In this document: one piece after another, positions 14,455-63,300 of the stretch | Position numbering within the stretch: position 1 is the stretch's first letter | Layout: the number at the start of each line of letters is the position of its first letter | DNA from: Anaeramoeba ignava BMAN | Lineage: Eukaryota; Protista; Anaeramoebae | Length of the DNA stretch: 64,000 nucleotides | NCBI GenBank assembly: GCA_028826165.1 | Contig: JAPDFW010000044.1 | Location: 530,617 to 594,616, forward strand | Direction: 5' to 3' | The notes under the pieces: generated by a model | The model's database searches: none | Told to the model about the DNA's origin: nothing | What the model saw: the letters and a program-made list of their open reading frames with translations, nothing else | Position numbers and translations under genes: made by a program

Positions 14455-16750
14455 CTAAATTATTAATCTTTTTAAAATCAATTATTTATAAATTATTTAA
14501 TAATAAATTATTAATCTTTCATTTATTTATTTATTAATAAATTATTAATCTTTTATTTATTTAATAATAAATTATTAATCTTTTATTTATTTAATAATAA
14601 ATTATTAATCTTTTATTTATTTATTAATAATAAATTATTAATCTTTCATTTATTTAATAATAATAAATTATTAATCTTTTCATTTATTTATTTATTAATA
14701 ATAAATTATTAATCTTTCTTTTATTTATTTATTTAATAAATAATAAATTATTAATCTTTCATTTATTTATTTATTAATAATAAATTATTAATCTTTCTTT
14801 TATTTATTTATTAATAATAAATTATTAATCTTTCATTTATTTATTTATTAATAAATTATTAATCTTTCATTTATTTATTATTAATAAATTATTAATCATT
14901 TATTTATTTAATAATAAATTATTAATCTTTTATTTATTTAATAATAAATTATTAATCTTTTATTTATTTAATAATAAATTATTAATCTTTTATTTATTTA
15001 TAATAAATTATTAATCTTTCATTTATTTATTAATAATAAATTATTAATCTTTCATTTATTTATTTATTAATAATAAATTATTAATCTTTTATTTATTTAA
15101 TAATAATAAATTATTAATCTTTTTATTTATTTATTTATTAATAAATTAATCTTTCATTTATTTATTTATTAATAATAAATTATCTTTATTTATTTATTTA
15201 ATAATAATAAATTATTAATCTTTTATTTAATCAATAATAAATTATTAATCTTTTATTTATTTAATAATAATAAATTATTAATCTTTTATTTATTTATTTA
15301 TTAATAAATTATTAATCTTTCATTTATTTATTAATAAATTATTAATCTTTCATTTATTTATTAATAAATTATTTATTTATTTAATAATAAATTATTAATC
15401 TTTCATTTATTTATTTATTAATAAATTATTAATCTTTCATTTATTTATTTATTAATAATAAATTATTAATCTTTTATTTATTTATTAATAATAAATTATT
15501 AATCTTTTATTTATTTATTAATAATAAATTATTAATCTTTTATTTATTTATTAATAATAAATTATTAATCTTTCATTTATTTATTTATTAATAATAAATT
15601 ATTAATCTTTTATTTATTTATTTAATAATAAATTATTAATCTTTCATTTATTTATTTAATAATAAATTATTAATCTTTTATTTATTTATTTAATAATAAA
15701 TTATTAATCTTTTATTTATTTAATAATAAATTATTAATCTTTTATTTATTTATTAATAATAAATTATTAATCTTTTATTCATTTATTAATAATAAATTAT
15801 TAATCTTTCATTTATTTAATAATAAATTATTAATCTTTTATTTATTTATTTTATAATAAATTATTAATCTTTCATTTATTTATTTATTAATAAATTATTA
15901 ATCTTTCATTTATTTATTTATTTAATAATAAATTATTAATCTTTTATTTATTTATTAATAATAAATTATTAATCTTTTATTTATTTATTAATAATAAATT
16001 ATTAATCTTTTATTTATTTATTTATAATAAATTATTAATCTTTCATTTATTTAATAATAAATTATTAATCTTTCATTTATTTATTTATTAATAATAATAA
16101 ATTATTAATCTTTCATTTATTTATTTATTATTAATAAATTATTAATCTTTTATTTATTTATTTATTTATTTAATAATAAATTATTAATCTTCCATTTATT
16201 TATTTATTAATTATTAATCTTTCATTTATTTATTTAATAATAAATTATTAATCATTAATTTATTTATTTATTTATTTAATAATAAATTATTAATCTTTTA
16301 TTTATTTATTAATAATAAATTATTAATCTTTTATTTATTTATTATTAATAAATTATTAATCTTTTATTTATTTATTAATAATAAATTATTAATCTTTCAT
16401 TTATTTATTAATAATAAATTATTAATCTTTTATTTATTTAATAATAATAAATTATTAATCTTTTATTTATTAATAAATAATAAATTATTAATCTTTTATT
16501 TATTTAATAATAATAAATTATTAATCTTTTATTTATTTAATAATAATAAATTATTAATCTTTTATTTATTTATTATTAATAAATTATTAATCTTTCATTT
16601 ATTTATTTAATAATAAATTATTAATCTTTTATTTATTTAATAATAATAAATTATTAATCTTTTATTTATTTAATAATAATAAATTATTAATCTTTCATTT
16701 ATTTATTAATTAATAATAAATTATTAATCTTTTATTTATTAAATTAATCT
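14455..16750. repeat. Intergenic AT-rich minisatellite, ~30-35 bp unit (AATAAATTATTAATCTTT[T/C]ATTTATTT..)
   Basis: Tandem unit directly visible over about 2.3 kb. Confidence 0.95.
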
Positions 16751-20722: not shown

Positions 20723-20754
20723 AATAAAAAGAAAAACAAAACACAATTTAAATT

Positions 20755-22046
20755 TAATAATAAAAAATGGAATAAATTTATTAATAAAAAATGGAATAAA
20801 TTTATTAATAAAAATATAATAAATTTATTAATAAAAAATGGAATAAATTTATTAATAAAAAATATAATAAATTTATTAATAAAAAATGAAATAAATTTAT
20901 TAATAAAAAATATAATAAATTTATTAATAAAAAATGAAATAAATTTATTAATAAAAAAGTGGAATAAATTTATTAATAAAAATGGAATAAATTTATTAAT
21001 AAAAAATAGAATAAATTTATTAATAAAAAATATAATAAATTTATTAATAAAAATATAATAAATTTATTAATAAAAATATAATAAATTTATTAATAAAAAT
21101 ATAATAAAATTAATAATAAAAAGTGGAATAAATTTATTAATAAAAAGTGGAATAAATTTATTAATAAAAAGTGGAATAAATTTATTAATAAAAATATAAT
21201 AAATTTATTAATAAAAAAATAGAATAAATTTATTAATAAAAATATAATAAATTTATTAATAAAAATATAATAAATTTATTAATAAAAAAGTGGAATAAAT
21301 TTATTAATAAAAATGGAATAAATTTATTATTAAAAATATAATAAATTTATTAATAAAAATATAATAAATTTATTAATAAAAATGGAATAAATTTATTAAT
21401 AAAAATATAATAAATTTATTATTAAAAAGTGGAATAAATTTATTAATAAAAAATGGAATAAATTTATTAATAAAAATATAATAAATTTATTAATAAAAAT
21501 ATAATAAATTTATTAATAAAAAGTGGAATAAATTTATTAATAAAAATATAATAAATTTATTAATAAAAAGTGGAATAAATTTATTAATAATAAAATATAA
21601 TAAATTTATTAATAAAAATATAATAAATTTATTAATAAAAATATAATAAATTTATTAATAAAAAGTGGAATAAATTTATTAATAAAAATGGAATAAATTT
21701 ATTAATAAAAAAATGGAATAAATTTATTAATAAAAATATAATAAATTTATTAATAAAAATATGGAATAAATTTATTAATAAAAAATTGGAATAAATTTAT
21801 TAATAAAAATGGAATAAATTTATTATTAAAAAGTGGAATAAATTTAATAATAAAAAATGGAATAAATTTATTAATAAAAAATAGAATAAATTTATTAATA
21901 AAAAATATAATAAATTTATTAATAAAAAGTGGAATAAATTTATTAATAAAAAGTGGAATAAATTTATTAATAAAAAAGTGGAATAAATTTATTAATAAAA
22001 AATATAATAAATTTATTAATAAAAAATATAATAAATTTATTAATAA
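20755..22046. repeat. Minisatellite, ~23-bp unit AAAAA[GTGG/TGG/TAT/TAG]AATAAATTTATTAAT
   Basis: Tandem unit containing the 12-bp palindrome AATAAATTTATT. Confidence 0.95.
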
Positions 22047-22162
22047 ATTAAATAAAAATGAAACAGATTTCTATAATGACGTTTTTATTTTTTTAATTTT
22101 TTTCAATCAAAAAAAATATTTTTTTTTCATTTTTTTTCATTTTTCATTTTTTTTCACAATCA

Positions 22163-23496: not shown

Positions 23497-26400
23497 AATA
23501 AATAATAAATATAATAAATTTATTAATAAAAAATAGAATAAATTTATTAATAAAAAGTGGAATAAATTTATTAATAAAAAGTGGAATAAATTTATTAATA
23601 AAAAAATATAATAAATTTATTAATAAAAAGTGGAATAAATTTATTAATAAAAAATATAATAAATTTATTAATAAAAAATATAATAAATTTATTAATAAAA
23701 AATATAATAAATTTATTAATAAAAAAGTGGAATAAATTTATTAATAATAAAAATGGAATAAATTTATTAATAATAAAAATGGAATAAATTTATTAATAAA
23801 AAATGGAATAAATTTATTAATAAAAATATAATAAATTTATTAATAAAAAAGTGGAATAAATTTATTAATAAAAATATAATAAATTTATTAATAAAAATAT
23901 AATAAATTTATTAATAAAAAAAATAAATTTATTAATAAAAAATATAATAAATTTATTAATAAAAAGTGGAATAAATTTATTATTAATAAAAAATAATAAA
24001 TTTATTAATAAAAATATAATAAATTTATTAATAAAAAATATAATAAATTTATTAATAAAAATGGAATAAATTTATTAATAAAAATAGAATAAATTTATTA
24101 ATAAAAAATGGAATAAATTTATTAATAAAAAATGGAATAAATTTATTAATAAAAATGGAATAAATTTATTAATAAAAATATAATAAATTTATTAATAAAA
24201 ATGGAATAAATTTATTAATAAAAATGGAATAAATTTATTAATAAAAATGGAATAAATTTATTAATAAAAATATGGAATAAATTTATTATCAAAAAAAAGT
24301 GGAATATATTAATAAAAATATAATAAAATTTTATTAATAAAAATATAATAAATTTATTAATAAAAATAAAAAAAATTTATTAAAAAAATATAATAAATTT
24401 ATTAATAATAAAAATATAATAAATTTATTAATAAAAATATAATAAATTTATTAATAAAAATATAATAAATTTTATTAATAAAAATATAATAAATTTATTA
24501 AAAAAATGGAATAAATTTATTAATAAAAAAATGGAATAAAATTAATAAAAATTAATAAAAATTAATAAAAATATAATAAATTTATTAATAAAAATGGAAT
24601 AAATTTATTAATAAAAAATGGAATAAAATTTATTAATAAAAAAAAATGGAATAAATTTATTATTAATAAAAATATAATAAATTTATTAATAAAAATATAA
24701 TAAATTTATAATAAAAATATAATAAATTTATTAAAAAAATATAATAAATTTATTAATAATAAAAATATAATAAATTTATTAATAAAAATATAATAAAATT
24801 TTGAAATTCAAATTTATTAATAAAAATATAATAAATTTATAATAAAAATATAATAAATTTATTAATAAAAATATAATAAATTTATTAATAAAAATAGAAT
24901 AAATTTATTAATAAAAATATAATAAATTTATTAATAAAAAATATAATAAATTTATTAATAAAAATATAATAAATTTTTAATAAAAATATAATAAATTTAT
25001 TTAGTGGAATAAATTTATTAATAAAAAATGGAATAAATTTATTAATAAAAATGGAATAAATTTATTAATAAAAATATAATAAATTTATTAATAAAAATAT
25101 AATAAATTTATTAATAAAAATATAATAAATTTAAAAAAAAAAATATAATAAATTTATTAATAAAAATATAATAAATTTATTAATAAAAATGGAATAAATT
25201 TAATAATAAAAATAGAATAAATTTATTAAAAAAAATAAATAAATTTATTAATAAAAAAGTGGAATAAATTTATTAATAAAAATATAACAAATTTATTAAT
25301 AAAAAATATAATAAATTTATTAATAAAAATATAATAAATTTATTAATAAAAATATAATAAATTTATTAATAAAAAAATATAATAAAATTAATAAAAATAT
25401 AATAAATTTATTAATAAAAAATGGAATAAATTTATTAATAAAAAATATATAAATTTATAAAAAAATATAATAAATTTATTAATAAAAATAGAATAAATTT
25501 ATTAATAAAAATAAATAAATTTATTAATAAAAATGGAATAAATTTATTAATAAAAAATATAATAAATTTATTAATAATAAATATAATAAATTTATTAATA
25601 AAAAGTGGAATAAATTTATTAATAAAAATATAATAAATTTATTAATAAAAATATAATAAATTTATTAATAAAAATATAATAAATTTATTAATTATTAATA
25701 AAAATATAATAAATTTATTAATAAAAAAAGTGGAATAAATTTATTAATAAAAATATAATAAATTTATTAATAAAAATGGAATAAATTTATTAATAAAAAT
25801 GGAATAAATTTATTAATAAAAATATAATAAATTTAATAATAAAAATATAATAAATTTATTAATAAAAATTGAATAAATTTATTAATAAAAAAATAATAAA
25901 TTTATTATTAAAAATTTAATAAATTTATTAATAAAAAATGGAATAAATTTATTTAAAAAAATGGAAAAATTTATTAATAAAAATTAATAAATTTATTAAT
26001 AAAAATGGAATAAATTTATTAATAAAAATGGAATAAATTTATTAATAAAAATGGAATAAATTTATTAATAAAAAATGGAATAAATTTATTAATAAAAAGG
26101 TGGAATAAATTTATTAATAAAAATATAATAAATTTATTAATAAAAAAATAATAAATTTATTAATAAAAAATAAAATAAATTTATTAATAAAAATATAATA
26201 AATTTATTAATAAAAATATAATAAATTTATTAATAAAAATAAAATAAATTTATTAATAAAAATATAATAAATTTATTAATAAAAATATAATAAATTTATT
26301 AATAAAAAGTGGAATAAATTTATTAATAAAAAAATATAATAAATTTATTAATAAAAATATAATAAATTTAATAAAAAATATAATAAATTTATTAATAAAT

Positions 26401-26947
26401 ATAATAAATTTATTAATAATAAATATAATAAATTTAATAATAAAAATATAATAAATTTATTAATAAAAATATAATAAATTTATTAATAAAAATATAATAA
26501 ATTTATTAATAAAAATATAATAAATTTATTAATAAAAAATAAATTTATTAATAAATTTATTAATAAAAAATGGAATAAATTTATTAATAAAAATATAATA
26601 AATTTATTAATAAAAAGTGGAATAAATTTATTAATAAAAAAGTGGAATAAATTTATTAATAAAAATATAATAAATTTATTAATAAAAAAATAGAATAAAT
26701 ATATTAATAAAAATATAATAAATTTATTAATAAAAATGGAATAAATTTATTAATAAAAAGTGGAATAAATTTATTAATAAAAATGGAATAAATTTATTAA
26801 CAAAAGTGGAATAAATTTATTAATAAAAATATAATAAATTTATTAATAAAAAGTGTAATAAATTTATTAATAAAAAATATAATAAATTTATTAATAAAAA
26901 TGGAATAAATTTATTAATAAAAAGTGGAATAAATTTATTAATAAAAA
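23497..26947. repeat. Minisatellite of the same ~23-bp family as 20755-22046, ~3.4 kb
   Basis: Same unit and same orientation as the upstream array. Confidence 0.95.
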
Positions 26948-36967: not shown

Positions 36968-39900
36968 ATGAGTGATTCTTCTCAAGAAACTAAATCAACA
37001 AGTAAATCAATAAGTAAATCAACACAATTAAAAGATAAAGAAAATAAAAAAGATCAAGAAACTAAATCAAAAAGTAAATCAATAAGTAAATCAACACAAT
37101 TAAAAGATAAAGAAAATAAAAAAGATCAAGAAACTAAATCAGAAACTAAATCAAAAAGTAAATCAAGAAATCAAAAAGTAAATCAAAAAGTAAATCAAAA
37201 AGTAAATCAAAAAGTAAATCAACACAATTAAAAGATAAAGAAAATAAAAAAGATCAAGAAACTAAATCAACAAGTAAATCAATAAGTAAATCAACACAAT
37301 TAAACGATAAAGAAACTAAATCAACAAGTAAATCAAAAAGTAAATCAACACAATTAAAAGATAAAGAAAATAAAAAAGATCAAGAAACTAAATCAAAAAG
37401 TAAATCAAAAAGTAAATCAATAAGTAAATCAACACAATTAAAAGATAAAGAAAATCAGAAAAAAAAAACAAGCAAACACAAACACAAACACAAACACAAG
37501 CACAAGCACAAGCATAAAAAGAACAACGAAAATGAAAATCAAAATCAAAATCAAAATGAAAATCAAAATCAAAATCAAAATGAAAATCAAAATCAAAATG
37601 AAAATGAAAATCAAAATGAAAATCAAAATCAAAATCAAAATGAAAATTCAAAATGAAAATCAAATTGAAAATGAAAATGAAAATGAAAATCAAATTGAAA
37701 ATCAAAATGAAAATCAAAATGAAAATGAAAATGAAAATGAAAATCAAAATGAAAATCAAATTCAAAATCAAAATGAAAATGAAAATGAAAATCAAATTCA
37801 AAATCAAAATCAAAATCAAAATCAAAATCAAAATCAAAATCAAAATCAAATTGAAAATCAAAATCAAAATCAAAATCAAAATGAAAATGAAAAAAATGAA
37901 AATGAAAATGAAAAGATCAGAATATCAAAATTATATCAATTTCATTCTCAAAAACTTAATCAACTTTTATTATCAGAACTTCTTTTAAATTATAAAATAA
38001 TGTTCCAAAATGAAGAAAATTGTGATTTTACAATTTATGTTGGAAATAAAAAAGAAAAGATTTTATGTCATAAAATAATACTTAATTCAAGATCAAGATT
38101 TTTTTATGAAAAAAATCATGAAATTATAGATAATGAAGAATTATATCTTCCAAAATTTGAAATTGATATTGTGAAACCAATAATTTCATTTCTTTATGAT
38201 TCAGAATTTAAATTGGATTTAAACAAATTTGAAAAATATTTTAAACTTGCAAAACATTTTAAATTAACAATTTTAAAAATCAAAATTGAAAAAGAAGTTT
38301 CAGAACAAATTAATGAAAAAAATGTTATTCAAATTTATTTCAAAAGTATTTCAATTGAATCAAGATTTCTTTCCAATTTTTGTGAAATTTTTATTAAAGA
38401 AAATATTCCTAAAATTATTGAAGAAGATCAAATTGGAGAAATTAATGATACAAAAATTAGAGAAATTATCAAAATCATTCAAAAAACACCAAAAGAAAAA
38501 AGAATAGATTTAATTTGGGAATTATCAAAAGATTGGGAGAAGAAATTCAAAAAAAATAAGAAAAATTTAATAGATAAATATAAATATATTGATCCAATTC
38601 AAATTCAAACAATTAAATATGATATTACAAAATTTCATGATATTATTTCTAATATTAAAAATTCTGGATATATTTCATCTGATTTAACAACTCGAAAAAA
38701 TCCAATTTTACCTTCAACTGATCAATTTGAATTAATGGTTCAAAAAAATAGAGAATTAAAACAAGAAAATGAAAAACAAAATAAAGAACTTAAAAAAATT
38801 CACAAAACTAATCAAGAAAAAGATCAAGAAATTATCGAAAAAGAAAATAAAATTCAAAAACAAAAAAATAAGATAACACAAATGGAAAAAGAACTTCAAA
38901 CATTTCAACCAGCAAGAAATGCAGAAAAAACCTTAGAAGATTTTGTAAATCAAACTTCAAATTTAACTGAAAGTAAATCATTTTAAATTTTAAATTTTAA
39001 ATTTTAAATTTTACTTACAATCAACAAAAAAAAATCAAAAAAAAAGCATCTATTCAACAAACAATTAAATTCATGAATTATTTTCCATTAGACCAAAATA
39101 TTCAAGAAAATGGATCATTTATTTTACAAAAATTTGCAACAGAAAATGAAAGTAAAATCTATCTTTTCAAATCAAAAAAAACAATTTTACTTTATCATTA
39201 TGAAAATTTAATACAATTATTTCCTTATATATTTTTTGATATAAATTTTTTTTTCTAAAATCAATTAATCTTTAATTTTTTTAAATTGGAATTTGAAAAC
39301 AATTAAAAGAAAATCAAAATCAAATAAGAGAATTAAATGGAATTGAGCTTATTATTAAATCAATGAATAATTTTCCAAATAATGAAGATATTCAAATCAA
39401 AGGATGCGGAGCTTTATTGAATATTTGTTTTAATGCTGGTAATTCAAAATTTAAATCAAAATCAAAATTAAAATCAAATTCAAAATCAAAATCAAAACCA
39501 AAATTAAATCAAAATCAATATCTAAATCAAATTCAAAATCAAATTCAAAATCAAAATCAAAATAAAAATCTAAAATGAAAATCAAAATCAAAATCAAAAC
39601 CAAAATTAAAAGAAAATCAAAATCAAATAAGAGAATTAAATGGAATTGAACCTATTATTAAATCAATGAATAATTTTCCAAATAATCAAGATATTCAATT
39701 TTATGGATGTGGAGCATTATGGAATATTTGTTTTAATGATCGTAAATTAATTACAAAAAAAAAGAGATTTAAATTCAAAATTAATTTATTCAAAAAAAAA
39801 AGAAAATCAAATTGAAATTAGTAAACTCAAAGGAATTAAAACTATTATTAAAGCAATGAATAATTTCCCAAATAATCAAGATATTCAAATCAAAGCATGC

Positions 39901-42900
39901 GGAGCCTTATTAAATATTGGATTAAATGATCGTAAATTAATTATAAAAAAAAAAAGAGATTTAAATTCAAAATTAATTTATTCAAAAAAAAAAGAAAATC
40001 AAATTGAAATTAGTAAACTCAATGGAATTGAAACTATTATTAAAGCAATGAATAATTTCCCAAACAATCAAATAATCCAAATACAAGCATGTGGAGCCTT
40101 ATTAAATATTGCTATGAATGAAGGTAGATTAAGGCATAAATACAACAAAAATAAAAATAAATTTATTCAAAAAAAATAATATAAATTTTATTCAAAGAAA
40201 ATAAAATCCAAATACGAAAGCTACATGGAATTGAAACTATTATTAAAGCAATGAATAATTTCCCAAATAATGAAGATATTCAAATCAAAGGATCTGGAGC
40301 TTTAGGGAATATTTCTTCAAATAATAATGGTAAATCACCAAAAAATCAAAAACAAAAATAAAAATCAATTTATTCAAAAAAAAAATAATATAAATTATTC
40401 AAAGAAAATCAAATCCAAATACGGAAGCTAAATGGAATTGAAACTATTATTAAATCAATGAATAATTTTCCAAATAATGAAGATATTCAATTTCAAGCAT
40501 GTGGAGCTTTATTAGTTATTGCTTTAAATTATGGTAAATCCAAATATAAATTACTAAATAGCAAATTCAATTTACTCAAAAAATAACAAAAAATAAAAAG
40601 AAAATCAAATTGAAATACGCAAATTAAATGGGATTGAAACTATTATTAAATCTATGAATAATTTCTCAAATAATCAAGATATCCAATTAAAAGGATGTGG
40701 AGCTTTATTGAATATTGCTTTAAATTATGGTAAATCCAAATATAAATTAATAAATAACAAATTCAATTTACTCAAAAAATAACAAAAAATAAAAAAAAGA
40801 AAATAAAATTGAAATAAGAAAGCATCAAGGGATTGAAACTATTATTAAAGCAATGAATAATTTTCCAAATAATGAAGATATTCAATTTCAAGGAAGTGAA
40901 AATTTAACAAATATTGCTTTGGTTTATGGTAAATCCAATCAGAAAAAAAGTTATCTAATTTAAATTTAAAAAATCAATTTATTTTAATAACAAAAAATAA
41001 AAAGAAAATCAAATTGAAATACGAAAATTAAATGGAATTGAGCCTATTATCAAAGCAATGAATAATTTCTCAAATAATGAGGGTATCCAAAATAGAGGAT
41101 GTGGAGCTTTATTGAGTATTAGTTATAATAATAATGGTAAATTCAATCAGAAAGAAATGATCGGATTTAAATTTACAAAATCATTTTAAAATCAAAAATA
41201 ACAAAAAATAAAAAGAAAATCAAATTGAAATACGAAAATTAAATGGGATTGAAACTATTATTAAAGCAATGAATAATTTCTCAAATAATGAGGGTATCCA
41301 AATCAAAGGATCTGGAGCTTTAGGGAATATTGCTTATAATGACGGTAAATTAAAAATAAAAATTAATAAAATTCAAATCCAAAAAATCAATTTATTTTAA
41401 AATCAAAAATAAAAATAAAAATAAAAATAAAAATAAAAAGAAAATCAAATTGAAATTAGTAAATTAAATGGAATTGAACCTATTATAAAAGCAATGAATA
41501 ATTTCCCAAATAATCAAGATATTCAAATCAGAGGATGTGGAGCCTTATTGAATATTGCTATGAATGAAGGTAAATTAAAAATAATTAATCCAATTTAAAT
41601 TTAAATTTAAAATCATTTTAAAATCAAAAGAAAATAAAATTGAAATACGAAAATTAAATGGAATTGGAGTTGTTATAAAAGCTATGAATAATTTCTCAAA
41701 ATAATCAAGATATTCAAAAAAATGGATGCTGGACTTTAGGGAATATTGCTATTAATGAAGGTAAGTTAAAAATAATTCATCTCATTGAAATCCAAAAAAA
41801 TACATTTATTTTAATAAATAAAAAAAAAAAGAAAATCAAATTGAAATCTATAATTTAAAAGGAATTGAACCTATTATCAAAGCAATGAATAATTTCCCAA
41901 ATAATGAAGATATTCAAAATAGAGGATGTGCAGCTTTATTGAGTCTTGCTAATAATAATCGTAAATTAACAAAAAATCAAAGAATATCAAAAACAAAATA
42001 ATTCATTTTAAAATCAAAAAAATTAAAAAGAAAATCAAAATCGAATAAGAGAATTAAATGGAATTGAACCTATTATTAAAACTATGAATAATCTCTCAGA
42101 TAATGAAAATATTCAAGTCACAGGATGTGGATTTTTATTGAATATTGCTTCGAATAATGATGGTAAATCAATAAAAAATTAAAGAATATCAAAAACAAAA
42201 TAATTCATTTTAAAATAAAAAGAAAATCAAATCGAAATACGCAAATTAAATGGAATTGAAACTGTTATTAAAACTATGAATAATCTCTCAAAAAATGAAG
42301 ATATTCAAATTAGAGGATGTGGATTTTTATTGACTATTGCTGTTAATAATAAAGGTAAATCAATAAAAAATCAAAGAATATCAAAAACAAAATAAATCAT
42401 TTTAAAATCAAAATTAAAAGAAAATCAAAATCGAATAAGAGAATTAAATGGAATTGAACCTATTATTAAAGCAATGAATAATTTCCCAAATAATGAAGAT
42501 ATTCAAGAAAATGGATGTTGGGCTTTAGGAAATATCTCTTTTAATAATGCTAGTAAATCAAACAAAATTAAATTCCAAAAACAAAATAATTCATTTTAAA
42601 ATCAAAAAAACAAAAAATAAAAAGAAAATCAAAATGAAATTCTCAAATTAAATGGGATTGAAACTGCTATAAAAGCAATGAATAATTTTCCAAATAATGA
42701 AGATATTCAAATTAAAGGATCTTGGACTTTATTGAGCTTTGCTAATAATGAAGGTAAATCACCAATAAATCCAATAAACATAAAATTTATTCAAATCAAA
42801 AAATCAAAAAATCGAAATAGAAAACAAAACAAAAATTAGAGAATTAAATGGGATTGAAACTGTTATAAAAGCAATGAATAATTTCCCAAATAATGAAGAT

Positions 42901-45900
42901 ATTCAAATCAGGGGATGTGGAATTGTATTGAATATAAGTTCAAATAATAAAGGTAAATCATCAATAAATTCAATAAACATAAAATTTATTCAAATCAAAA
43001 AATCAAAAAATCAAAAAATCGAAATAGAAAACAAAACAAAAATTAGAGAATTAAATGGGATTGAAACTGTTATAAAAGCAATGAATAATTTCCCAAATAA
43101 TGGAGATATTCAACATTATGGATGTTGGGTTTTATTAAATATTGGTTCAAATAATAATGGTAAATCAATAAAAAAATCAAATCCAAAAAATCAATTTATT
43201 TAAAAACAAAAAAAAAAAAGAAAATCAAATTGAAATAAACAAATTGAAAGGAATTGAATCAATTATAAAAGCAATGAATAAGTTCCAAAATAACCAAGAT
43301 ATTCAACTTAAAGGATGTGGAGCTTTAGGAATTATTGTGAATAATGAAGGTAAATAAATTAACACAAAATGAAAATGAAAATGAAAATAAAAATAATTCT
43401 TCTTTTTAATCTTTATTAAATCAAAAAAAAAAAAGAAAATCAAAAAGAGTTGATGAAATTAAATGGGATTGATACAATCAAAAAAGCAATGGGCCAATTC
43501 CATCCTCATTTGCCACACGAAAAAAATAAAATTTTTTATATAAGAAATTTTTTTTTGTTTTTTAAAAATAATAAAAATTTCTTTTTGAGGATTTTAATTT
43601 TGATTTTGATTTTTATTTATTTAAATCCTCTTTTCAACAAAATTATGAAAAGGAAATGATTCCCAAAAAAAAATCTCACGGAATTTTAAGGAGATTGTAT
43701 TTAGGATTGCTCTCAAATTTGGGTCTTCTTTCCCTTTTTCTTCTAACTTATTCTTAAGAAATTGAATTTGTTGATACAACCTTCTTATTCTAAAATGGAT
43801 TGTTTGAACTTCTTCTCTTTCTAGAAGAAATGCAAGCATATATCGAGTTTTTCTTCCATGTTTTTTTTGAATAAAATTAACAATTTGAGGGCATTCCCAT
43901 CTTAAAAAGCATCTCAAAAATCCAAATAAACATATGAAAGGTCCACAATCGTTGCTATTTTTTTGTAACTCTTTTTGCTTCCATTTAATAACCTTCAATT
44001 TTGCCTTCAATAATGAATTAAGCTGATTTATTCCTCTAGAGTATATTTGATGTGGTTTACTATTAAAGATCTCCAATTCATTCTTATTTCGATGAAAAAC
44101 TGCTAGAATCCAGTGATGTTGATAAAATAAGGGAATAATCCATTCATTTTTTATTGCAAGAAGCTCACTATTTTGGATTATTTGAGATCTAATCATTTCC
44201 AAATTTCCTGAATCAAAAATAAAAAGATGTTGGGGTCGTTTGTAGCAGTAAAGAATTTGAAAAAAATTATCAATATCAGAAGTGGAAAACCAATTTTTAG
44301 TTGGGATCCAAGATAAAATTCGATCTCTCCAAGTTGTAAATCTTCCAGGATCTAGACTTTCATTAATTCTCAGTGTTTCAATAATTTGATCTATGTTTTC
44401 CAGATTGTAAATAAGATCCAAATTTTGTTGCATATTTTGTTGTTTACCTATCTCTTCTTGTATATTTCGTTCATTCTTTTCTGATTCCTTTTTTTCTTTC
44501 TCTGTTTGTTTTGACTTATGTTTTGACTTATGTTTTGATTTATGTTTAGATTTATGTTTTGACTTATGTTTAGATTTATGTTTAGATTTATGTTTTGATT
44601 TATCTTTAGATTTATGTTTTGATTTATGTTTAGATTTATGTTTTGATTTATCTTTAGATTTATCTTTAGATTTATGTTTTTGTTTATCCTTTTTTTTTGA
44701 AATAGGTTCTGAATTTGAATTATTTCTATCACAACTTGCTTTTTTCTCATCATTTTGAATAATATTAATTTTCTTTTCCTCATTTAACTTTCCTTTTTTT
44801 GTTGTTTTCCTTCTTTTTCTTTGTTGTTTATTCTCCATTTTGCTTTTGTTTTTTTCTTCCTCTTTTTTTAGCTTCTCTTCTTTTTGTGCACGTTTTATTT
44901 CTTTGATTACTTTTTTGTTTTCTTGTTTTTTTTCATATATCTTTGTTTCTTTTTCATTTCTAGTTGTTTTTCTCAAAGTACGTCCTTTTGCTGACAAATT
45001 ATAAAGTGCAGCACAAACCAAAATGACTGCTTTATGTAAATGAAGATTGAGCCGCACTTTTTCTCTCAGAATTCTTTTCACCTTTAATATGGAGAAAACA
45101 TTTTCTATAATAGATCTTTCTTTATTAATCAAATCATTTCTATCCTTTTGTTCTTTTGTAAAACCTTTTTTTCTTTTTTTGAATGGAGTGATAGAATATG
45201 AATGATGGAATGCCTTATCTCCTAAGACTTTATAAGGTTTTAATTTTTTATCCAAATCACATGCATAAACAGCAGGAGAATCATGCATAGATCCCTCAAA
45301 ACCAACTGCAAAAAAAATTATGACTCCTTTTCGATCACAAACAACTATTGCTTTCATACAGCTTGTTCCTCTCTTCATACTATACCAAGCTTTTTCATCT
45401 TTCAAAATTCTGCTTCGAGGAAAATCAGTCCCGTCAATTACACCAATAACAGAAGGAAGACCTACTTGATTCCATTCCGCTTCCAATCTTATAAGTTCTT
45501 CTCTTGGAGGAAATTGAATCTGGTTTTCCAGAATAGTTTTTAATTGTGTTAACACTTCTTCAATATATCTCTTCACTGTTGTTGTCCCAATACGCCAAAT
45601 CACTGCTAAAAAAGAATAAGAACAATAATGTTTTATCCAAGTTAATAGGATTAATAAACGATTGGGAAGATCCACTAATTTCTCGTTTCGAGAAGGACTA
45701 TTAGGAGGACTTGAATTTTGCTTATTTGGAAATGCAGTTTGAATACCATTAATAAGAAATTCAATTGTTTGTCTTTTTTCTCCAGTAAAACTGAGCAAAC
45801 TTTTTGGATCGTTTTTGATTTCTTCCCAAACATCTCTGTAAAGTAGATTTTTCACAATTTGAGACTGAAATTGTGAATTCTGACTTGAAGATTGTGAAGA

Positions 45901-46428
45901 AATTGGAGAATTGGAATTTTGAGATGAAATGATTTTTGATTTATTGAGTGTGTCTTTTTGATAAAGAAAAAATCTATAGACTTCAATCATTTCTTGGATT
46001 AGTTCATCATAAGTGAGCGTGTTTTTGAGCTGCTTTAATTGATCTACAGTGTTTTTACTCACTTTAATTGTGGTATTTTTTGATTTAGAATTGTTATTCA
46101 TTTGTGTTGAGTTGAAAAAAATATTTAGAAATGAAAATAAAAAGAAAAAAATGAAATTGGATTGTTTATTTTTGGATTAAAAAAAAAATTTTAGTTAAAC
46201 ATTCACTATTTCAATCTTAACTGGGTATACCTAAGTGTCGAAAATTTTCTTTGAGTATAATTTGAGTATTGGAATCGTTTTATTTTAAATAAATGAGGAG
46301 TTGAAATTTTGAAATTTTCCTTAGGAATCTCCCCAATGAATAATTTTCCAAAAAATTCAAAAATTCAAGAAAAAGCAAATTTGATTATTAAAAAATTACC
46401 TAAAAAGAAGAATTTCTTTTTCTTCTAA
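36968..46428 (+). CDS. BTB/BACK - coiled coil - armadillo-repeat protein: large first exon (36968-38972), cap exon 39047-39151, 20 cassette exons (39310-43349), terminal exon 43436-43490 + 46338-46428 split by a transposon
   Basis: BTB motif CDFTIYVGNKKEKILCHKIILNSRSRFF...IISFLYDSE. Repeats of consensus ENQIEIRKLNGIETIIKAMNNFPNNEDIQxxGCGALLNIAxN are ARM-like. Every exon has AG/GT boundaries in phase 1. Confidence 0.85.
36983..37460 (+). repeat. Coding tandem repeat, 72-nt unit (QETKSTSKSISKSTQLKDKENKKD) at the N-terminus of the BTB-ARM gene
   Basis: CAAGAAACTAAATCA recurs at 36983, 37055, 37127, 37255 and 37381. Confidence 0.85.
39310..43349 (+). repeat. Tandem array of 20 exon+intron units, each exon encoding one ARM repeat
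   Basis: Exons: 39310-39438, 39613-39741, 39803-39931, 39995-40123, 40198-40329, 40405-40533, 40601-40729, 40800-40928, 41005-41136, 41216-41344, 41441-41569, 41631-41760, 41832-41960, 42031-42162, 42223-42354, 42421-42552, 42625-42753, 42821-42952, 43028-43159, 43221-43349. All are 129 or 132 nt except one of 130 nt. Confidence 0.92.
43491..46334 (-). mobile_element. DNA transposon of the PIF/Harbinger/ISL2EU (IS5-related) group, 2844 bp, AAT target-site duplication
   Basis: Removing 43491-46337 restores the host repeat AAAGCAATGAATAATTTTCCA (KAMNNFP). AAT lies at 43488-43490 and 46335-46337. Imperfect TIRs GGGCCAATTCC / GGGGAGATTCC (8/11). Inverted TCCTCATTT at 43503 and 46291-46299. The element encodes a DDE transposase. 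Confidence 0.93.
43621..46101 (-). CDS. Transposase fusion: RHH-like N-terminus, HTH_Tnp_4-like, DDE_Tnp_4-like nuclease, K-rich linker, Ulp1/C48-like (clan CE) cysteine protease
   Basis: VIDGTDFP, YSMKRG, GSMHDS, LGDKAF and RSIIENVFSILK give the DDE triad. LLILLTWIKHYCSYSFLAVIWRIGTTTVKRYI is the HTH. WFSTSDID...IIPLFYQHHWIL...IFNS...QKNSNDCGPFIC is the protease. The 826-aa ORF is intact and intronless. Confidence 0.9.
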   Translation of the reverse strand: MNNNSKSKNTTIKVSKNTVDQLKQLKNTLTYDELIQEMIEVYRFFLYQKDTLNKSKIISSQNSNSPISSQSSSQNSQFQSQIVKNLLYRDVWEEIKNDPKSLLSFTGEKRQTIEFLINGIQTAFPNKQNSSPPNSPSRNEKLVDLPNRLLILLTWIKHYCSYSFLAVIWRIGTTTVKRYIEEVLTQLKTILENQIQFPPREELIRLEAEWNQVGLPSVIGVIDGTDFPRSRILKDEKAWYSMKRGTSCMKAIVVCDRKGVIIFFAVGFEGSMHDSPAVYACDLDKKLKPYKVLGDKAFHHSYSITPFKKRKKGFTKEQKDRNDLINKERSIIENVFSILKVKRILREKVRLNLHLHKAVILVCAALYNLSAKGRTLRKTTRNEKETKIYEKKQENKKVIKEIKRAQKEEKLKKEEEKNKSKMENKQQRKRRKTTKKGKLNEEKKINIIQNDEKKASCDRNNSNSEPISKKKDKQKHKSKDKSKDKSKHKSKHKSKHKSKDKSKHKSKHKSKHKSKHKSKHKSKHKSKHKSKQTEKEKKESEKNERNIQEEIGKQQNMQQNLDLIYNLENIDQIIETLRINESLDPGRFTTWRDRILSWIPTKNWFSTSDIDNFFQILYCYKRPQHLFIFDSGNLEMIRSQIIQNSELLAIKNEWIIPLFYQHHWILAVFHRNKNELEIFNSKPHQIYSRGINQLNSLLKAKLKVIKWKQKELQKNSNDCGPFICLFGFLRCFLRWECPQIVNFIQKKHGRKTRYMLAFLLEREEVQTIHFRIRRLYQQIQFLKNKLEEKGKEDPNLRAILNTISLKFREIFFWESFPFHNFVEKRI

Positions 46429-46479
46429 CTTTTGATTTTTCTAATCTTTTTTTTTTCTTTCTCTTTGAAAAATAAAATA

Positions 46480-47310
46480 ATTTAAAAAAATGAGAATAGA
46501 TTTAATTTAATATTTAATTTATAAATTAATTTAAAAATATAATTTAATATTTAATTTTATTATTAAAATAATAATTTAATGTTTTAGATTTGAATATTTT
46601 ATTATTTAAATATTTAACATATAAATATAAAAAATAAGAATAGATTTAATTTAATATTTAATTTATAAATTAATTTAAAAATATAATTTAATATTTAGTT
46701 CCATTATTAAAATAATAATTTAATGTTTTAGATTTAAATATTTTTTTATTATTTAAATATTTAACATAAAAATATAAAAATAAGAATAGATTTAATTTAA
46801 TATTTAATTTATAAATTAATTTAAAAATACAATTTAATATTTAGTTTTATGTTTAAAATAATAATTTATTGTTTTAGATTTAAATATTTTATTATTTAAA
46901 TATTTAACATAAAAATATAAAAATGAGAATAGATTTTAATTTAATATTTAATTTATAAATTAATTTAAAAATATAATTTAATATTTAATTTTATTATTCA
47001 ATTTCTAATTTAATGTTTTTAGATTTAAATATTTTATTATTTAAATATTTAACATATAAATATAAAAAATAAGAATAGATTTAATTTAATATTTAATTTA
47101 TAAATTAATTTAAAAATATAATTTAATATTTAATTCCATTATTCAATTTCTAATTTAATGTTTTAGATTTAAATATTTTATTATTTAAATATTTAACATA
47201 TAAATATAAAAAATAAGAATAGGTTTAATTTAATATTTAATTTATAAATTAATTTAAAAATATAATTTAATATTTAGTTTTATGTTTAAAATAATAATTT
47301 AATGTTTCAA
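46480..47310. repeat. Tandem repeat, ~145-bp unit, ~5.7 copies, intergenic
   Basis: The GAATAG anchor recurs at 46494, 46638, 46784, 46927, 47073 and 47217. Confidence 0.9.
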
Positions 47311-57367: not shown

Positions 57368-60300
57368 TTAAATCAATTTATCTTTTTCTGTTGTCAAATT
57401 TTCGGAATATAAAGATTTCTCAGCAGTAATTGTTTCAGTAACAATTTGGTCAATTTCCTTATCATCAATCTGGTCTGAAACAGAGTAAATAGAAAGAGAA
57501 GAAGTGATTTTGACGACTCTTCTTTTCTTTTTCCAATAATAACCAAGAATAACAATCAAAGCTAAAAAAGCAAAACAACCAGAAACAGCAATAATAATTA
57601 TAGTAGCTTTTTGAGCGGAAAATTTTGTTTCGCAAGAAAAATCCGGAGACCATTCAGCAAAGCCAATTTCATTGAGAGCGCGAATATGAACAGTGTATGT
57701 TACTTCGGAATCAAGATTTGAAAAATAAAAGGAATTTTCTGGAGTATTTAAAAAAGTGGAATGATGAGGGGAAGATAGTTTGATCTGATAAAACGAGATG
57801 TTTGGAGAGTTTGGAGAGGGGACATCCCAAGAAATGGAGAATGAGCTTGATGAGACATTAGAGAATTTGCAGGAGGTGATCTGGGCGGGGACCGAAGGGG
57901 AAGTTGTAACGTTGATGGGGTCGCTCCAAAGTGAGCTCCATCCGTTATCAGCCAGAGCGGCTATGCGGACGGTGTAGTTAGAGAAGGGGCGGACATTAAC
58001 AAAGGTGTAAACAGTCTGGAAAATTTGTCCCCAGGCGTAAGTGTTGTTGTTTATCTCTGCGATGTAATTAATGACATAAGGATCAGTTTCGTCCCAACCG
58101 AAAACAATTTCGTTATAAGAAAGATCGATGATATGAAGATTAGTAATTGGCGGAGGTATTTTCGAAAGCGTTACAAATGAATATAGTGTTTGTTGGCCGC
58201 AACCGAATGAGTTGCAAGCATTTATAAGAAAACCGTATTTTGTCTGGAAATCCAAATTTTGATCGACAATCAAAGATGTTGAATTTGTCGTGAAATTTCC
58301 GTGATAGCTAGTTCCATTCTCCGAATAAACATAGATGCGATAACTTGTGATCTCCGCGCCTCCGCTCCACGGAGTTGGCCATTCTACTCCCAATCGGTAT
58401 CTTTCGCGGATGAAAAGCGACATGTTATTAACCTCCCCAGGCACAGTGGCTGCTGTTGTGTCGCAGATGATCTCTGGGCTCCACAGCGCGCTCAAACCTG
58501 CAGAGTTCTGCGCCTTGATTTTTATTGTGTAATTTGATGAAAAAAGATTCACAAGAATTAAATTGATTGTTTCTTGCGATGTTTTATTTGCAAAGATCAA
58601 AACAGGATTTTCTGATGTTCCTGTTTGCACGTATGATATGAGATAGTTTAAGATATCAGCCCCGCCATTCTCGCTTGGAGACAACCAGTCGATGCCGATT
58701 GATGTCTCGTTTTTCTGGCTTGTGTTGCAGAACAACTCAACGACTTGGCCCGGAGGCGATGGATCGGATGTTGAGATGATGATCCGTCCTGTTGAACTTC
58801 CATTTCCAATAGAGTTTCTTGCGTATCCGTCAATGCAATAATTTGCGGAGAGAAGATTGTCGATGCGGTACACAAGGCTTTGTCTGGTTGTTTGTGAAGT
58901 TAGTGAAGATAATATTGCGGATGACTGTTGTATTTTCGCTGAATGTCAATTCGAAAAAATATTCCAAAATATAACGGCCGTTCATTTGAGCAGGAATCCA
59001 GAAGATATCAATTGAAGTCGAAGAAGCGGAGACTTGTGAGAGATCTGTTATTGCGCCTGGCACCTCCGGATCTGCTGTTTGCATTACTGCTGATATATTT
59101 TCACTGAGCCCAGCCGCGTTCATTGCGGAAACCGAAATTGTGTAATTGTCTGACAGCAGATTTATTATGTTTGCTGTGATTGATACTCCCCAAACAATCT
59201 GTGTTCCGTTATTGTTTGCATCGTTTACACAAACATATGTGACTTGATATCCTGTTATTTCTGCTCCGTTGTTGTTTTCTGGTGGTTCCCATCTCACAGA
59301 AATGCTGGATGCCGTGTTTGCTGTGAATGTGAGATTGAGTGGTTTGCTTGGCACGTTTGGTTTCTGTGTTGGTGCCTCAAGAACATCTGAGTATGGCCCA
59401 TCTCCGTTGCGGTTTCTTGCAAGTACCTTGATGTTGTATGTTCCTGAAAGGAGCGAGGAAATTGTGTATGAATTTCCATTTTTTGGATTTTCAAATAAAT
59501 TTTCAACAGAATTATCGAATTTTGATTTGAAATCTTTAAATTTTGATTTTAATTTTGAATTATCAAATTTTGATTTGAAATCTTTTAATTTTGAATTAAA
59601 TTTTGAATTATTAAATTTTGATTTCAATTCTTTAAATTTTGATTTAAATTTTGATTTGAATTCTTTAAATTTTGATTTTAATTTTGAATTAAATTCTGAA
59701 TTATTAAATTTTGATTTCAATTCTTTAAATTTTGATTTCAATTTTGATTTAAATTCTGATTTAGATTCGGATTCAGAATTCGTATTAATAACTACAGTAT
59801 TCCACTCAGATGATCCCTCCAAACACCACGCAACAACATAAGCAGTAATTTCTGCTCCACCATCATCAGGTGTATCCCATTCTATAGTCAAAGAGGTTGA
59901 TGTAGAATTTGTACAATTTGGTTTTGGCGTGATCTGTCCAGGATGAGTCGAGGGATTTGATTCGAACTCAAACACAGTTGAATTGTCTCCCCAACCAACA
60001 TCATTCATACTAGCGATTTTCACATCATACAATGCAGAAGACTCGAGACCAGTGATGTTGTAAACAGTTATATTGTTTCCAGTTTCATTTTGCAAAAAAA
60101 TAGGATCATCATGAAGTTTCCAATACAAACAATAGTTCTGAATAAGAGCACCACCAAAGTCCTCAGGAGCGGTCCAAATGATTTGTAGAGAAGAAGAAGT
60201 GCCGCCTGTTTTGATAATTGTTGTAATTGCTGATGGAACAGATGGCGATTTTGTGGAAAAAATTTGTTGATCACTTTGCGGTCCTTCGCCGATCGAATTG

Positions 60301-63300
60301 CATGCCGCAATTTCGACAGAATAATTATCTGAAAGTAAGTTTTCCAAGAAGTAGATGTTTGCCTGTTCACCTGTGTTGACTTGAGTCCATGTTGAATCTT
60401 CTTCTGGTTTGTATTTTATTGTGTAATTTGCAATGATGTCTCCGCCGGTGTCAGGAGGATCCCAAAGAATCCCAATAGAAGAAGAAGATTTACTTGCTTG
60501 GGAGACTGTAGTGATTTTTCCAGGGGTAGTCATAGGAAGAGTAGGGAAGACAAAATCTGCGCTCCAGGGACTAGTCATCCCGTTGAGAGATCGGATTTTG
60601 AATGTAAAATTTCCGGAAAGTAAACCGTCGAAAATTTCGGTTGTAAAATTTGGATCAACAAATTTTGAATAAGACTTATTTGCCGAATCAGTTATCTGTA
60701 TTTCGTAGTTTGTCAGAAGCTGCCCGCCATTGGAAACTGGTGGGTCCCAGGCTAATGTAATTGAGTCGGAAGTACTGTTGGATTTCCATACTGTGGTTAT
60801 TGCGAATGGAGCAACAGCAGGATCTGTCCAGTAGGTGATGTTCTCTGACTGTTCTCCTTTTCCAACGGAATTTATTGCGCAGACACGAATGATATAAGCG
60901 CCTGAAAGGAGATTTTCTAACTGGAAAAATAATTGATTTCCGGATGTGCTTGAAAATGTCCAATTATTTGTCGAGTTGCGCTGGACATATGCGACCTCGT
61001 AAGTGTTGATTGTGGCGCCGCCATTATCCGGTGCTGACCAATAGACGACAAATGATGTGGAGTTTTTTGTGGTTTGGTTCTGGTTCACGTCTATGACCCT
61101 GTCAGGCACGGACGCGTTTTTTGTTTCTCCAATGCTTATGTCGCTCCATTCTCCAGTCCCAGCGCTGTTTATTGCGCTTATTTTCATCTTGTATTTCCCT
61201 GATAGATCAACTGTTACAATGTAAGAGTTATCGTTGTCGTTCTCAATTGTGTAATTTGTCCATTGGCAATTTTGACAGCTTTCATTCTGCAAAGCGATGA
61301 CATATTTTTCAATTGAGAAATTTGTGTTTGGTGTTGTCCAGTTGATAAGGATCTCCTTTGCAGACAAAGCGCTTGATATTGGTGGTTCCATTTTTTCTGG
61401 TGTGCATTCATAGTTTCCTGTTCCCGTGTTGTTTGTGCCTTGCGGACATGCTGTGCATTTTGCGTTTCCTTCTCCAGATGCATATGTTTGTTCATTGCAA
61501 GGTGAACAATAGCTATTGTTTTGATCAGAAAATTCCCCAGGTTTGCAGAACTCGCAATTTGGTGATGGTGGTTCTGACCCAGGAAGGCATATGCATTCTC
61601 CTGTAGGATAGCAATTTCCTCCGTTATAACATATTGTGCAATTTTTTAATTGATTTTTTTCTGAGTTGTATGTCTTTTTTTTTGGATAATAAATATATAA
61701 TTTAATTTAAATAATATAATTTAAATAATTTAATTAATTTAATATAAATAATTTAATATAAATAATTTAAATAATATAATTTAATATAAATAATATAAAT
61801 AATATAATTTAAATAATATAATTTAATTTAATTAATTTAAATAATTTAATTTAAATAATATAATATAAATAATTTAATTTAATTTAATTTAAATAATATA
61901 ATATAATAAATATTCAATACTTACACATGCATCTGATGATCCATCAGTCGGAAAATCTTCAATATTAAAAGAATTATTCACAACATAATATGTTCCTTCA
62001 AAAATTAAATTAGGATGAATGTTTTTATCATTACTTGTGCAAAATAACCCTACTCTATTTTCAATAGCTGTAAAATTTACAATTCTTGTTCCACACATAT
62101 TATTATAAATTCCACCAGAATTCATTTCAAAAACACAATTTGAAACCACAATATCAGTTAAATTTGTTTTGCAATTTAATTGAATTGCACCAACTATTCA
62201 TTTTAAAAAAATATTCAATTCAATTCAATATAAATATTTTAATATAAATATTTTAATATTTAATTCAATAATATAAATATTTTAATATTTAATTTAATAA
62301 TATAAATATTTTAATATTTAATTCAATATAAATATTTTAATATTTAATTTAATAATATAAATATTTTAATATTTAATTTAATAATATAAATATTTTAATA
62401 TTTAATTTAATAATATAAATATTTTAATATTTAATTCAATAATATAAATATTTTAATATTTAATTCAATAATATAAATATTTTAATATTTAATTTAATAA
62501 TATAAATATTTTAATATTTAATTTAATAATATAAATATTTTAATATTTGATTCAATAATATAAATATTTTAATAATTAATTCAATATGAATATTTTTTAA
62601 TAATTAATTTAATAATATAAATATTTTAATATTTAATTCAATAATATAAATATTTTTAATATTTATTTTAATTCAATATAAATATTTTAATATTTAATTT
62701 AATAATATAAATATTTTAATAATTAATTTAATAATATAAATATTTTAATATTCAATTTAATAATATAAATATTTTAATATTCAATTCAATTCAATTCAAT
62801 AATATAAATATTTTTAATATTTAATTTAATAATATAAATATTTCAATATTGAATTTAATAATATAAATATTTTAATATTTAATTTAATAATATAAATATT
62901 TTAATATTTAATTTAATAATTAATTCAATATGAATATTTTAATAATTGAATATTCAATTCAAATACAATATTTTAATAATTGAATTTAATAAAAAAAAAT
63001 ATTTTTAATATTTAATTCAAACAATATAAATATTTTTAACAAAATTTAGTATTTAATAAATCAATTATTAAGATATTTAATTTACTGATAAATATCAAAA
63101 AATATTTTTTTTATTCAATTCAATTCAATATAAATATTTTAATATTCAATTCAATTCAAATAAATATTTTAATATTTAATTTTAATAATATAAATATTTA
63201 TTTATTTTTTTTAATTTGAAACATAATATTCAATTCAATAATATAAATATTTTAATATTTAATTCAATATATAAAATATTTTATTATTTTAATTTTAATT

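Follow-up and report, generated by a model that had tools for sequence, protein, structure and literature searches.

In brown algae, candidate immune receptors of the ROCO-LRR and NB-ARC-TPR types (PMC3341825, PMC11378527) encode one repeat per frame-neutral exon, vary in repeat number, undergo gene birth and death, and experience diversifying selection on their ligand face. In the fungal HNWD NLRs het-d and het-e (PMC12222747), too, concerted evolution keeps the repeats near-identical, and diversifying selection acts on a few hypervariable sites. Here we describe a gene that resembles both systems in these respects, the selection being seen at the level of its gene family. It lies in a window (the whole stretch of DNA that was analysed, 64,000 nucleotides, positions 530,617 to 594,616 of contig JAPDFW010000044.1) from Anaeramoeba ignava BMAN, an anaerobic metamonad amoeba whose genome is 80.65% A+T (PMC11550330) and is assembled as 42.8 Mb in 147 contigs. 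The gene joins a BTB-BACK head and a coiled coil to 20 armadillo (ARM) repeats, each in an exon of its own, and is one of a large family. The products of this family are probably substrate receptors for ubiquitin ligases that are diversified genomically, by crossing-over or gene conversion together with selection on the binding face, and spliced constitutively.

Structure, fold and splicing of the window gene

All exons of the gene lie on the forward strand. Exon 1 (36968-38972) holds the start codon, which agrees with the starts of paralogues, a low-complexity leader of K, S, N and Q residues, the BTB domain (at about 38000-38305), BACK-like helices and the coiled coil. An N-terminal cap exon of 105 nt, in phase 1 on both sides, follows at 39047-39151, and homologous cap exons precede other arrays. 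The 20 cassette exons (39310-43349) are separated by GT-AG introns of 60-174 nt and begin at 39310, 39613, 39803, 39995, 40198, 40405, 40601, 40800, 41005 and 41216 (cassettes 1-10) and at 41441, 41631, 41832, 42031, 42223, 42421, 42625, 42821, 43028 and 43221 (cassettes 11-20). Each encodes one repeat of 43-44 residues between the borders AG/AA at its start and N/GTA at its end. This is the arrangement given in a preliminary description of the locus, a BTB/BACK and coiled-coil exon and a cap exon followed by 20 one-repeat exons, and its further statement that any cassette could be removed without breaking the frame also holds, as every cassette is phase-1 and frame-neutral. The lengths of 129 or 132 nt that it reported, with phase-1 borders, apply to 19 cassettes (129 nt in 12 exons, 132 nt in seven); cassette 12 measures 130 nt in the assembly. 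A DNA contig (run X1, record 4) and an RNA contig (run X3, record 11) both span 41698-41701 on the forward strand with a gap of 1 nt and are otherwise identical to the assembly. Since each lacks the surplus A, the frameshift of cassette 12 is an assembly error, and its interpretation as a sign of a pseudogene is ruled out by the reads. Two 1-nt frame breaks in the low-complexity 5' part of exon 1, near 37165 and 37645, are probably assembly errors as well.

The BTB domain is matched by Pfam PF00651 (E 3.6e-13; 50.1 bits against a cut-off of 20.5). The Pfam scan of exon 1 gave no direct BACK match; in BLASTP the exon matched a paralogue (P0004) that carries Pfam BACK at E 2e-31, and the alignment spans the BACK region of P0004. 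Foldseek matched an AlphaFold2 model of the BTB exon to KBTBD2, SPOP, gigaxonin and KLHL11 (template modelling score about 0.5), all of which are BTB-BACK adaptors of Cullin-3 (Cul3). The head is thus nearest in fold to Cul3 adaptors, in agreement with its earlier assignment as BTB-BACK, and by this likeness it may bind a Cullin-3 ligase; eight cullin genes are present in the genome. For the repeats, the fold evidence was drawn from single window exons and annotated paralogues. AlphaFold2 modelled the annotated paralogue P0001 as three-helix ARM repeats (predicted local distance difference test score about 90 over the repeats), and Foldseek matched this model to designed ARM proteins, beta-catenin and Vac8. 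Window cassette 16 matches ARM proteins in the PDB, including designed ARM proteins and importin alpha (E 1e-13), with its W33 and N37 aligned to the same residues of the designed repeats. The ARM solenoid that had been proposed is supported by both the paralogue model and this alignment. As to the helix-3 asparagine ladder of such solenoids, position 37 is Asn in 118 of 168 intact cassettes.

The read evidence consisted of contigs from four runs over 40470-46450, which covers cassettes 6-20; such contigs drop rare forms. Runs X3 and X5 behave as RNA, in that they contain GT-AG joints, of which the DNA run X1 shows none. The RNA joints fall at introns 6, 8, 11, 14, 15 and 17 (depth 56-96 in run X3), and each links neighbouring cassettes exactly as modelled. 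No skipped cassette with GT-AG ends was found among the joints listed in the two RNA runs. The window gene is expressed, and its cassettes are spliced in plain order: at these six introns the modelled exon-intron structure is the one used in RNA, and the combinatorial use of cassettes that had been suggested finds no support among these joints. One RNA joint connects the end of cassette 15 backwards with the start of cassette 12, has one base changed and most likely comes from the mRNA of a paralogue. The introns within 39439-43435 have A-rich 3' ends, often with a run of A directly before the AG and without a pyrimidine tract, and the RNA joints show that such introns are used.

A family of cassette arrays with a variable groove

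A search with a single cassette returned 1385 candidates in the genome, the best 150 of which represent, by our count, at least 38 arrays on 28 contigs. Paralogous arrays that differ in length, which the preliminary description had led us to expect, are therefore present genome-wide. A survey of 20 loci, in which close BTB paralogues are over-represented, showed arrays of 3 to 21 or more cassettes, all with the same length and phase and usually closed by a terminal cap exon. All profile matches in the window and these 20 loci lie on the coding strand, with no inverted cassettes. The cassette module follows a RING-kinase-SH3 head, precedes RCC1-BTB and also joins BTB, three partners that are all related to ubiquitin ligases.

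Protein databases yielded only a handful of family members, and most, including the closest paralogues, were not found there; a transcriptome set contains the complete BTB-ARM transcript of a less closely related member (P0175). Single-base frame breaks interrupt the BTB exons or cassettes of many paralogues (loci L025, L027, L039, L043 and others). Because the break in cassette 12 proved to be an assembly error, many of these may be assembly errors too, which would explain the absence of such genes from protein databases; single-base errors of this kind hide members of the family from view. Outside A. ignava, the best relative reached about 38% identity in searches bounded by length windows. 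The papers that could be searched on Anaeramoeba with BTB or armadillo, including the genome paper, contained no description of the family.

Some relatives are rearranged. On contig C107, a three-cassette BTB gene without a terminal exon (L029, 199200-209199) and a headless array of 11 cassettes (L030, 186000-195999) lie about 12 kb apart, and the gap between them holds an open reading frame (ORF) that by eye resembles a Mutator-type transposase; the two are probably one gene split by another transposon. At L035 (C2:268000-277999), a close BTB paralogue with 63% identity (ORF 132-2261) ends in short DDWGNN-type repeats, and no ARM array was found in this stretch, which indicates that the BTB head also swaps tails. 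At L033 (C68:272000-281999), a BTB-ARM gene and a RING-kinase-SH3-ARM gene stand in tandem and have the cap and cassette module in common, and the kinase head seems to be attached where the coiled-coil exon ends.

Among the 168 intact cassettes, residue entropy is highest at positions 40, 36, 30 and 29, which together with 33 and 37 line up on a single face of helix 3 in the P0001 model; we take positions 29, 36 and 40 to be binding positions from helix geometry. In designed ARM proteins, Glu30, Trp33 and conserved asparagines bind the peptide (PMC4756613, PMC6838082). The 168 cassettes present 152 distinct groove codes, and the nearest neighbour of a cassette is mostly found in the same gene. 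Pairs within an array whose downstream introns diverge by less than 2% differ by 1.1% in those introns and by 1.7% at synonymous sites, as against 26.4% in the groove; the interleaved helix-3 core codons differ by 3.5% and helices 1-2 by 4.1%. As IQ-TREE limits omega to 1, a codon likelihood model was purpose-written. It gave a groove omega of 3.2 for 115 cassettes from 12 homogenised loci (2dlnL, twice the log-likelihood difference, 21.8) and of 1.85 over all 168 cassettes, with 0.4-0.5 in helices 1-2; these values are indicative only, because recombination violates the single-tree assumption of the model, while the intron comparison needs no tree. Sites 36 and 40 were significant in this model after correction for 40 sites.

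The codons themselves are informative. At codon 36 the third base is G in about 100 of the 115 cassettes while the first two bases change, in a genome that is 80% A+T; leucine is written TTG or CTG at this position and TTA at position 35, and codons 36, 37 and 40 are almost invariant at the third base. The pattern at codon 36 therefore points to selection on amino acids rather than to local hypermutation or adenine-specific mutagenesis. Mutagenesis of the latter kind, as in diversity-generating retroelements, was considered and rejected, as codon 36 centres on TGG/TTG and changes at bases other than adenine. A linked reverse transcriptase or template repeat was not found among the window ORFs scanned, and no genome-wide search for one was made.

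The window array is older and less homogenised than others of the family, since the average difference between its introns is about 20%, compared with 2-7% in homogenised arrays. The groove is still its most variable part (45% against 17-18%), and omega, to be read with the same reserve as above, is 0.76 in the groove and 0.21 in helices 1-2, the latter reflecting purifying selection. Diversification, as the preliminary description had it, is supported at the binding face at the level of the family (groove omega 1.85-3.2) and not by the window array taken alone. The near-identical intron groups that it had listed are all confirmed. The introns after cassettes 2 and 3 differ by one substitution in 61 aligned bases, those after 6 and 7 by two in 67, those after 13, 14 and 15 by 3-4 differences in 60-66, and those after 17 and 18 by two in 67, in comparison to a mismatch of 26% in shuffled introns. 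The duplicated unit, on the other hand, is not the exon plus its intron as had been supposed: the exons flanking these introns differ by 9-23%, so whole exon-intron units are not near-identical. The similar tract mostly spans the intron and the front half of the exon after it, ending before helix 3; in the pair 17/18, for example, there are two differences in 67 intron bases, none in the first 60 exon bases and 14 in the next 62. The exchanged unit comprises an intron and a portion of an exon rather than a whole cassette, and whole-cassette duplication as the sole mechanism is ruled out by similarity tracts that break inside exons. In the window array, near sites (with 15 nt used for near pairs) are more compatible than far ones (P 0.001), and two groove motifs occur in all four combinations in another array, both of which argue for exchange within exons as well as between them.

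A transposon in the last exon and the surroundings of the gene

The terminal C-cap exon, not remarked on as interrupted in the preliminary description, is split by a DNA transposon of 2844 bp on the reverse strand (43491-46334). The 5' part of the exon (43436-43490) ends with the left copy of an AAT target-site duplication; the stranded 3' part (46335-46428) begins with the right copy, contains the original stop codon and is 74-81% identical to the terminal exons of paralogues. The terminal inverted repeats of the element are 11 bp long and imperfect, matching at 8 of 11 positions. Its ORF encodes a transposase of 826 residues (43621-46101, reverse strand) comprising a helix-turn-helix domain (HTH_Tnp_4), DDE_Tnp_4 (Pfam E 1.3e-25), a lysine-rich linker and a C-terminal Ulp1-like peptidase C48 domain, which is borderline at 20.8 bits against a cut-off of 20.7. 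Among PHIS transposons, the Pangu group is defined by target duplications of the form ANT and termini starting with GG or AG (PMC4482050). The insert shares with this group the DDE_Tnp_4 transposase, the ANT duplication (AAT at both copies described here) and short termini that start with GG; it differs in having a single long ORF with helix-turn-helix and Ulp1-like domains instead of two ORFs, and in its imperfect inverted repeats. Because of this single ORF with extra domains, it is filed only as PHIS-superfamily and Pangu-like.

Another copy, on contig C98, departs from this one by one substitution, one 1-nt indel and the length of a tandem repeat, and the flanks of the two copies have AAT/AATG alone in common. 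The insertion is very recent, and the element has been active recently. A 5-bp target duplication, CAATG, was rejected, as the C98 copy lacks the C and AAT brings the terminal repeats into register. Two copies are assembled, and a read depth of about 5-6 times single copy suggests roughly 5-6 copies in the genome. The transposon and its transposase are present in the RNA runs and hence transcribed. Several more distant families of this PHIS-type transposon occur elsewhere in the genome. In the window gene, read-through into the transposon swaps the final cap helix for about 55 transposon-coded residues; the BTB domain, the cap and all 20 repeats remain in frame.

The neighbours of the gene are ordinary ones: an EDRF1-like gene, PSMD13/Rpn9, NOC3 and a disulphide isomerase. 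A Ro60/TROVE gene lies at 8806-10746 on the reverse strand, and at 57368-61391, also on the reverse strand, two adjoining ORFs, richer in GC and with numerous fibronectin type III repeats, probably represent one large surface protein. Long AT-rich tandem arrays are found between and within genes at 14497-16748, 20749-22047, 23501-26947 and 46485-47307 (periods 33, 24, 23 and 144).

Candidate ubiquitin-ligase receptors and their relation to known systems

In the mechanism that we favour, the BTB-BACK head would dock on a Cullin-3 ligase and the coiled coil would link it to the ARM solenoid, and an extended peptide would be bound in the helix-3 groove of this solenoid; each gene would then deliver a different target to ubiquitination. 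Unequal crossing-over and gene conversion between near-identical stretches of intron and framework would alter the number of repeats and keep the scaffold uniform. Groove residues would be re-assorted by exchange points that fall within exons, and selection would retain new residues at positions 29, 30, 33, 36, 37 and 40. The transcript is spliced exon after exon, and diversity would arise in the genome. We see about an even chance that the targets are fast-changing foreign or selfish proteins, and a role in defence or symbiont control may be envisaged. A bolder form of the proposal, in which recombination below the exon level varies the groove within clonal populations and provides an antibody-like intracellular system against viruses, bacteria or symbionts, seems to us unlikely.

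Diversity could instead be generated by combinatorial splicing or programmed somatic shuffling, each cell or transcript using its own subset of cassettes in the manner of Dscam or as proposed for brown algae. The frame-neutrality of every cassette would permit this, the repeats of brown-algal ROCO genes are alternatively spliced (PMC11378527), and our RNA data include the back-joint from cassette 15 to cassette 12 and eight joints beyond those listed. All six listed GT-AG joints nevertheless connect neighbours and none skips, paralogue mRNAs can account for the back-joint and for the joints without GT-AG ends, and shuffling is at odds with 20 loci free of inverted cassettes and with the lack of any recombinase signal seen, so that we regard this explanation as distinctly unlikely. 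Neutral turnover, by which an AT-rich, slippage-prone genome would expand an ARM scaffold whose surface residues are merely unconstrained, is in keeping with a genome full of tandem repeats and with a groove omega compatible with 1 in the window array. It is very improbable in view of the family data: groove bases differ about 20 times as much as adjacent introns and 15 times as much as synonymous sites, when relaxed sites should not exceed neutral divergence, while other surface positions, in helices 1-2, are conserved and the third bases of codons 36, 37 and 40 are near-constant.

A different question is whether the family serves the amoeba itself, as a set of adaptors for its own proteins (for instance, expanded membrane-trafficking families) rather than for defence. 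BTB-BACK adaptors are generally known to act on self proteins, and the window gene sits among housekeeping genes; Anaeramoeba also has expanded Rab and TBC families (PMC11550330). Self targets would rarely push omega well above 1 amid continual homogenisation, however, and gene birth, breakage and change in repeat number are all fast in this family, which makes this alternative rather unlikely. For the window copy in particular, it is possible, if on balance doubtful, that the gene is decaying, the transposon having removed the C-terminal cap and left an unstable or non-functional product. The replacement of the final helix by the insertion at 43491 speaks for this, as does transcription of the transposase gene head-on into the 3' end of the window gene; no uninterrupted copy occurs in the assembly, and no empty-site joint is among those listed. 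Against decay stand the 20 intact repeats, the purifying selection on helices 1-2, the transcription and splicing of the gene, and the recency of the insertion; besides, a half-depth empty allele could be hidden among the joints not listed.

Genomically diversified, constitutively spliced substrate receptors remain the explanation that we prefer, and several observations weigh against it. Omega can be inflated by recombination, with which a single tree is incompatible, and the class test was not blind, in that the variable positions had been seen by eye before the groove set was fixed. The groove omega of the window array does not differ from 1, the recombination test was significant in only two of nine arrays, and Asn37, part of the expected ladder, is retained in only 118 of the 168 cassettes. 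A single strain was examined, and the binding of Cul3, the binding of peptides and the kind of target belong to the inferred part of this account.

The family, rather than the window copy, carries the interest of these results; the window copy adds RNA evidence of plain splicing, exchange below the exon level and a fresh transposon insertion. How foreign proteins are recognised inside single-celled eukaryotes is largely an open question, for which the family offers a concrete candidate in Anaeramoeba, a metamonad that houses bacterial symbionts.

Compared to the brown-algal receptors, the A. ignava genes use ARM repeats in place of LRR or TPR and, by Pfam scans, BTB-BACK or RING-kinase modules in place of ROC-COR or NB-ARC. 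The algal genes have inverted repeat exons in their introns, which are absent from the window and the 20 loci, and they splice their repeat exons alternatively, whereas none is skipped among the joints listed for cassettes 6-20, in contigs that drop rare forms. Exchange tracts in A. ignava break inside exons, and the host is a metamonad, not a stramenopile. Repeat-per-exon diversifying receptors have arisen again here, with an ARM scaffold and ubiquitination as the proposed output. In the fungal HNWD proteins a WD40 sensor sits on a NACHT cell-death receptor, in contrast to ARM repeats, one per exon, on ubiquitin-ligase modules; no NACHT or HET domain appeared in Pfam scans of the gene. Mutually exclusive exon clusters of the Dscam type contribute one exon per mRNA, unlike the neighbouring cassettes joined together in RNA here.

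Like the BTB-BACK Cul3 adaptors (KLHL/KBTBD, SPOP, gigaxonin), the window gene couples a BTB-BACK fold to a following repeat domain for substrate and belongs to a lineage-specific expansion, but its substrate domain is an ARM cassette array of variable length. ARMC5 is an adaptor with both ARM and BTB, although it is single-copy and has its ARM repeats before the BTB domain, and the nematode MATH-BTB and F-box expansions are not known to have a repeat-per-exon design. In Dictyostelium Aardvark, too, a coiled coil and an adaptor domain for a ubiquitin ligase precede LRRK2-type ARM repeats. This adaptor domain is F-box-like, in contrast to the BTB-BACK of the window gene, and identity is about 32%; the NCBI name aardvark on paralogues reflects repeat similarity, not orthology. 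The repeats themselves have a parallel in designed armadillo repeat proteins (PMC4756613, PMC6838082), which also vary at the binding positions of helix 3 on a near-constant scaffold closed by N- and C-caps. The A. ignava repeats are natural and genomically diversified, their binding is predicted, and Asn37 varies in 30% of them. With hundreds of natural repeats that combine a constant scaffold with a varied binding face, the family could inform the design of armadillo binders.

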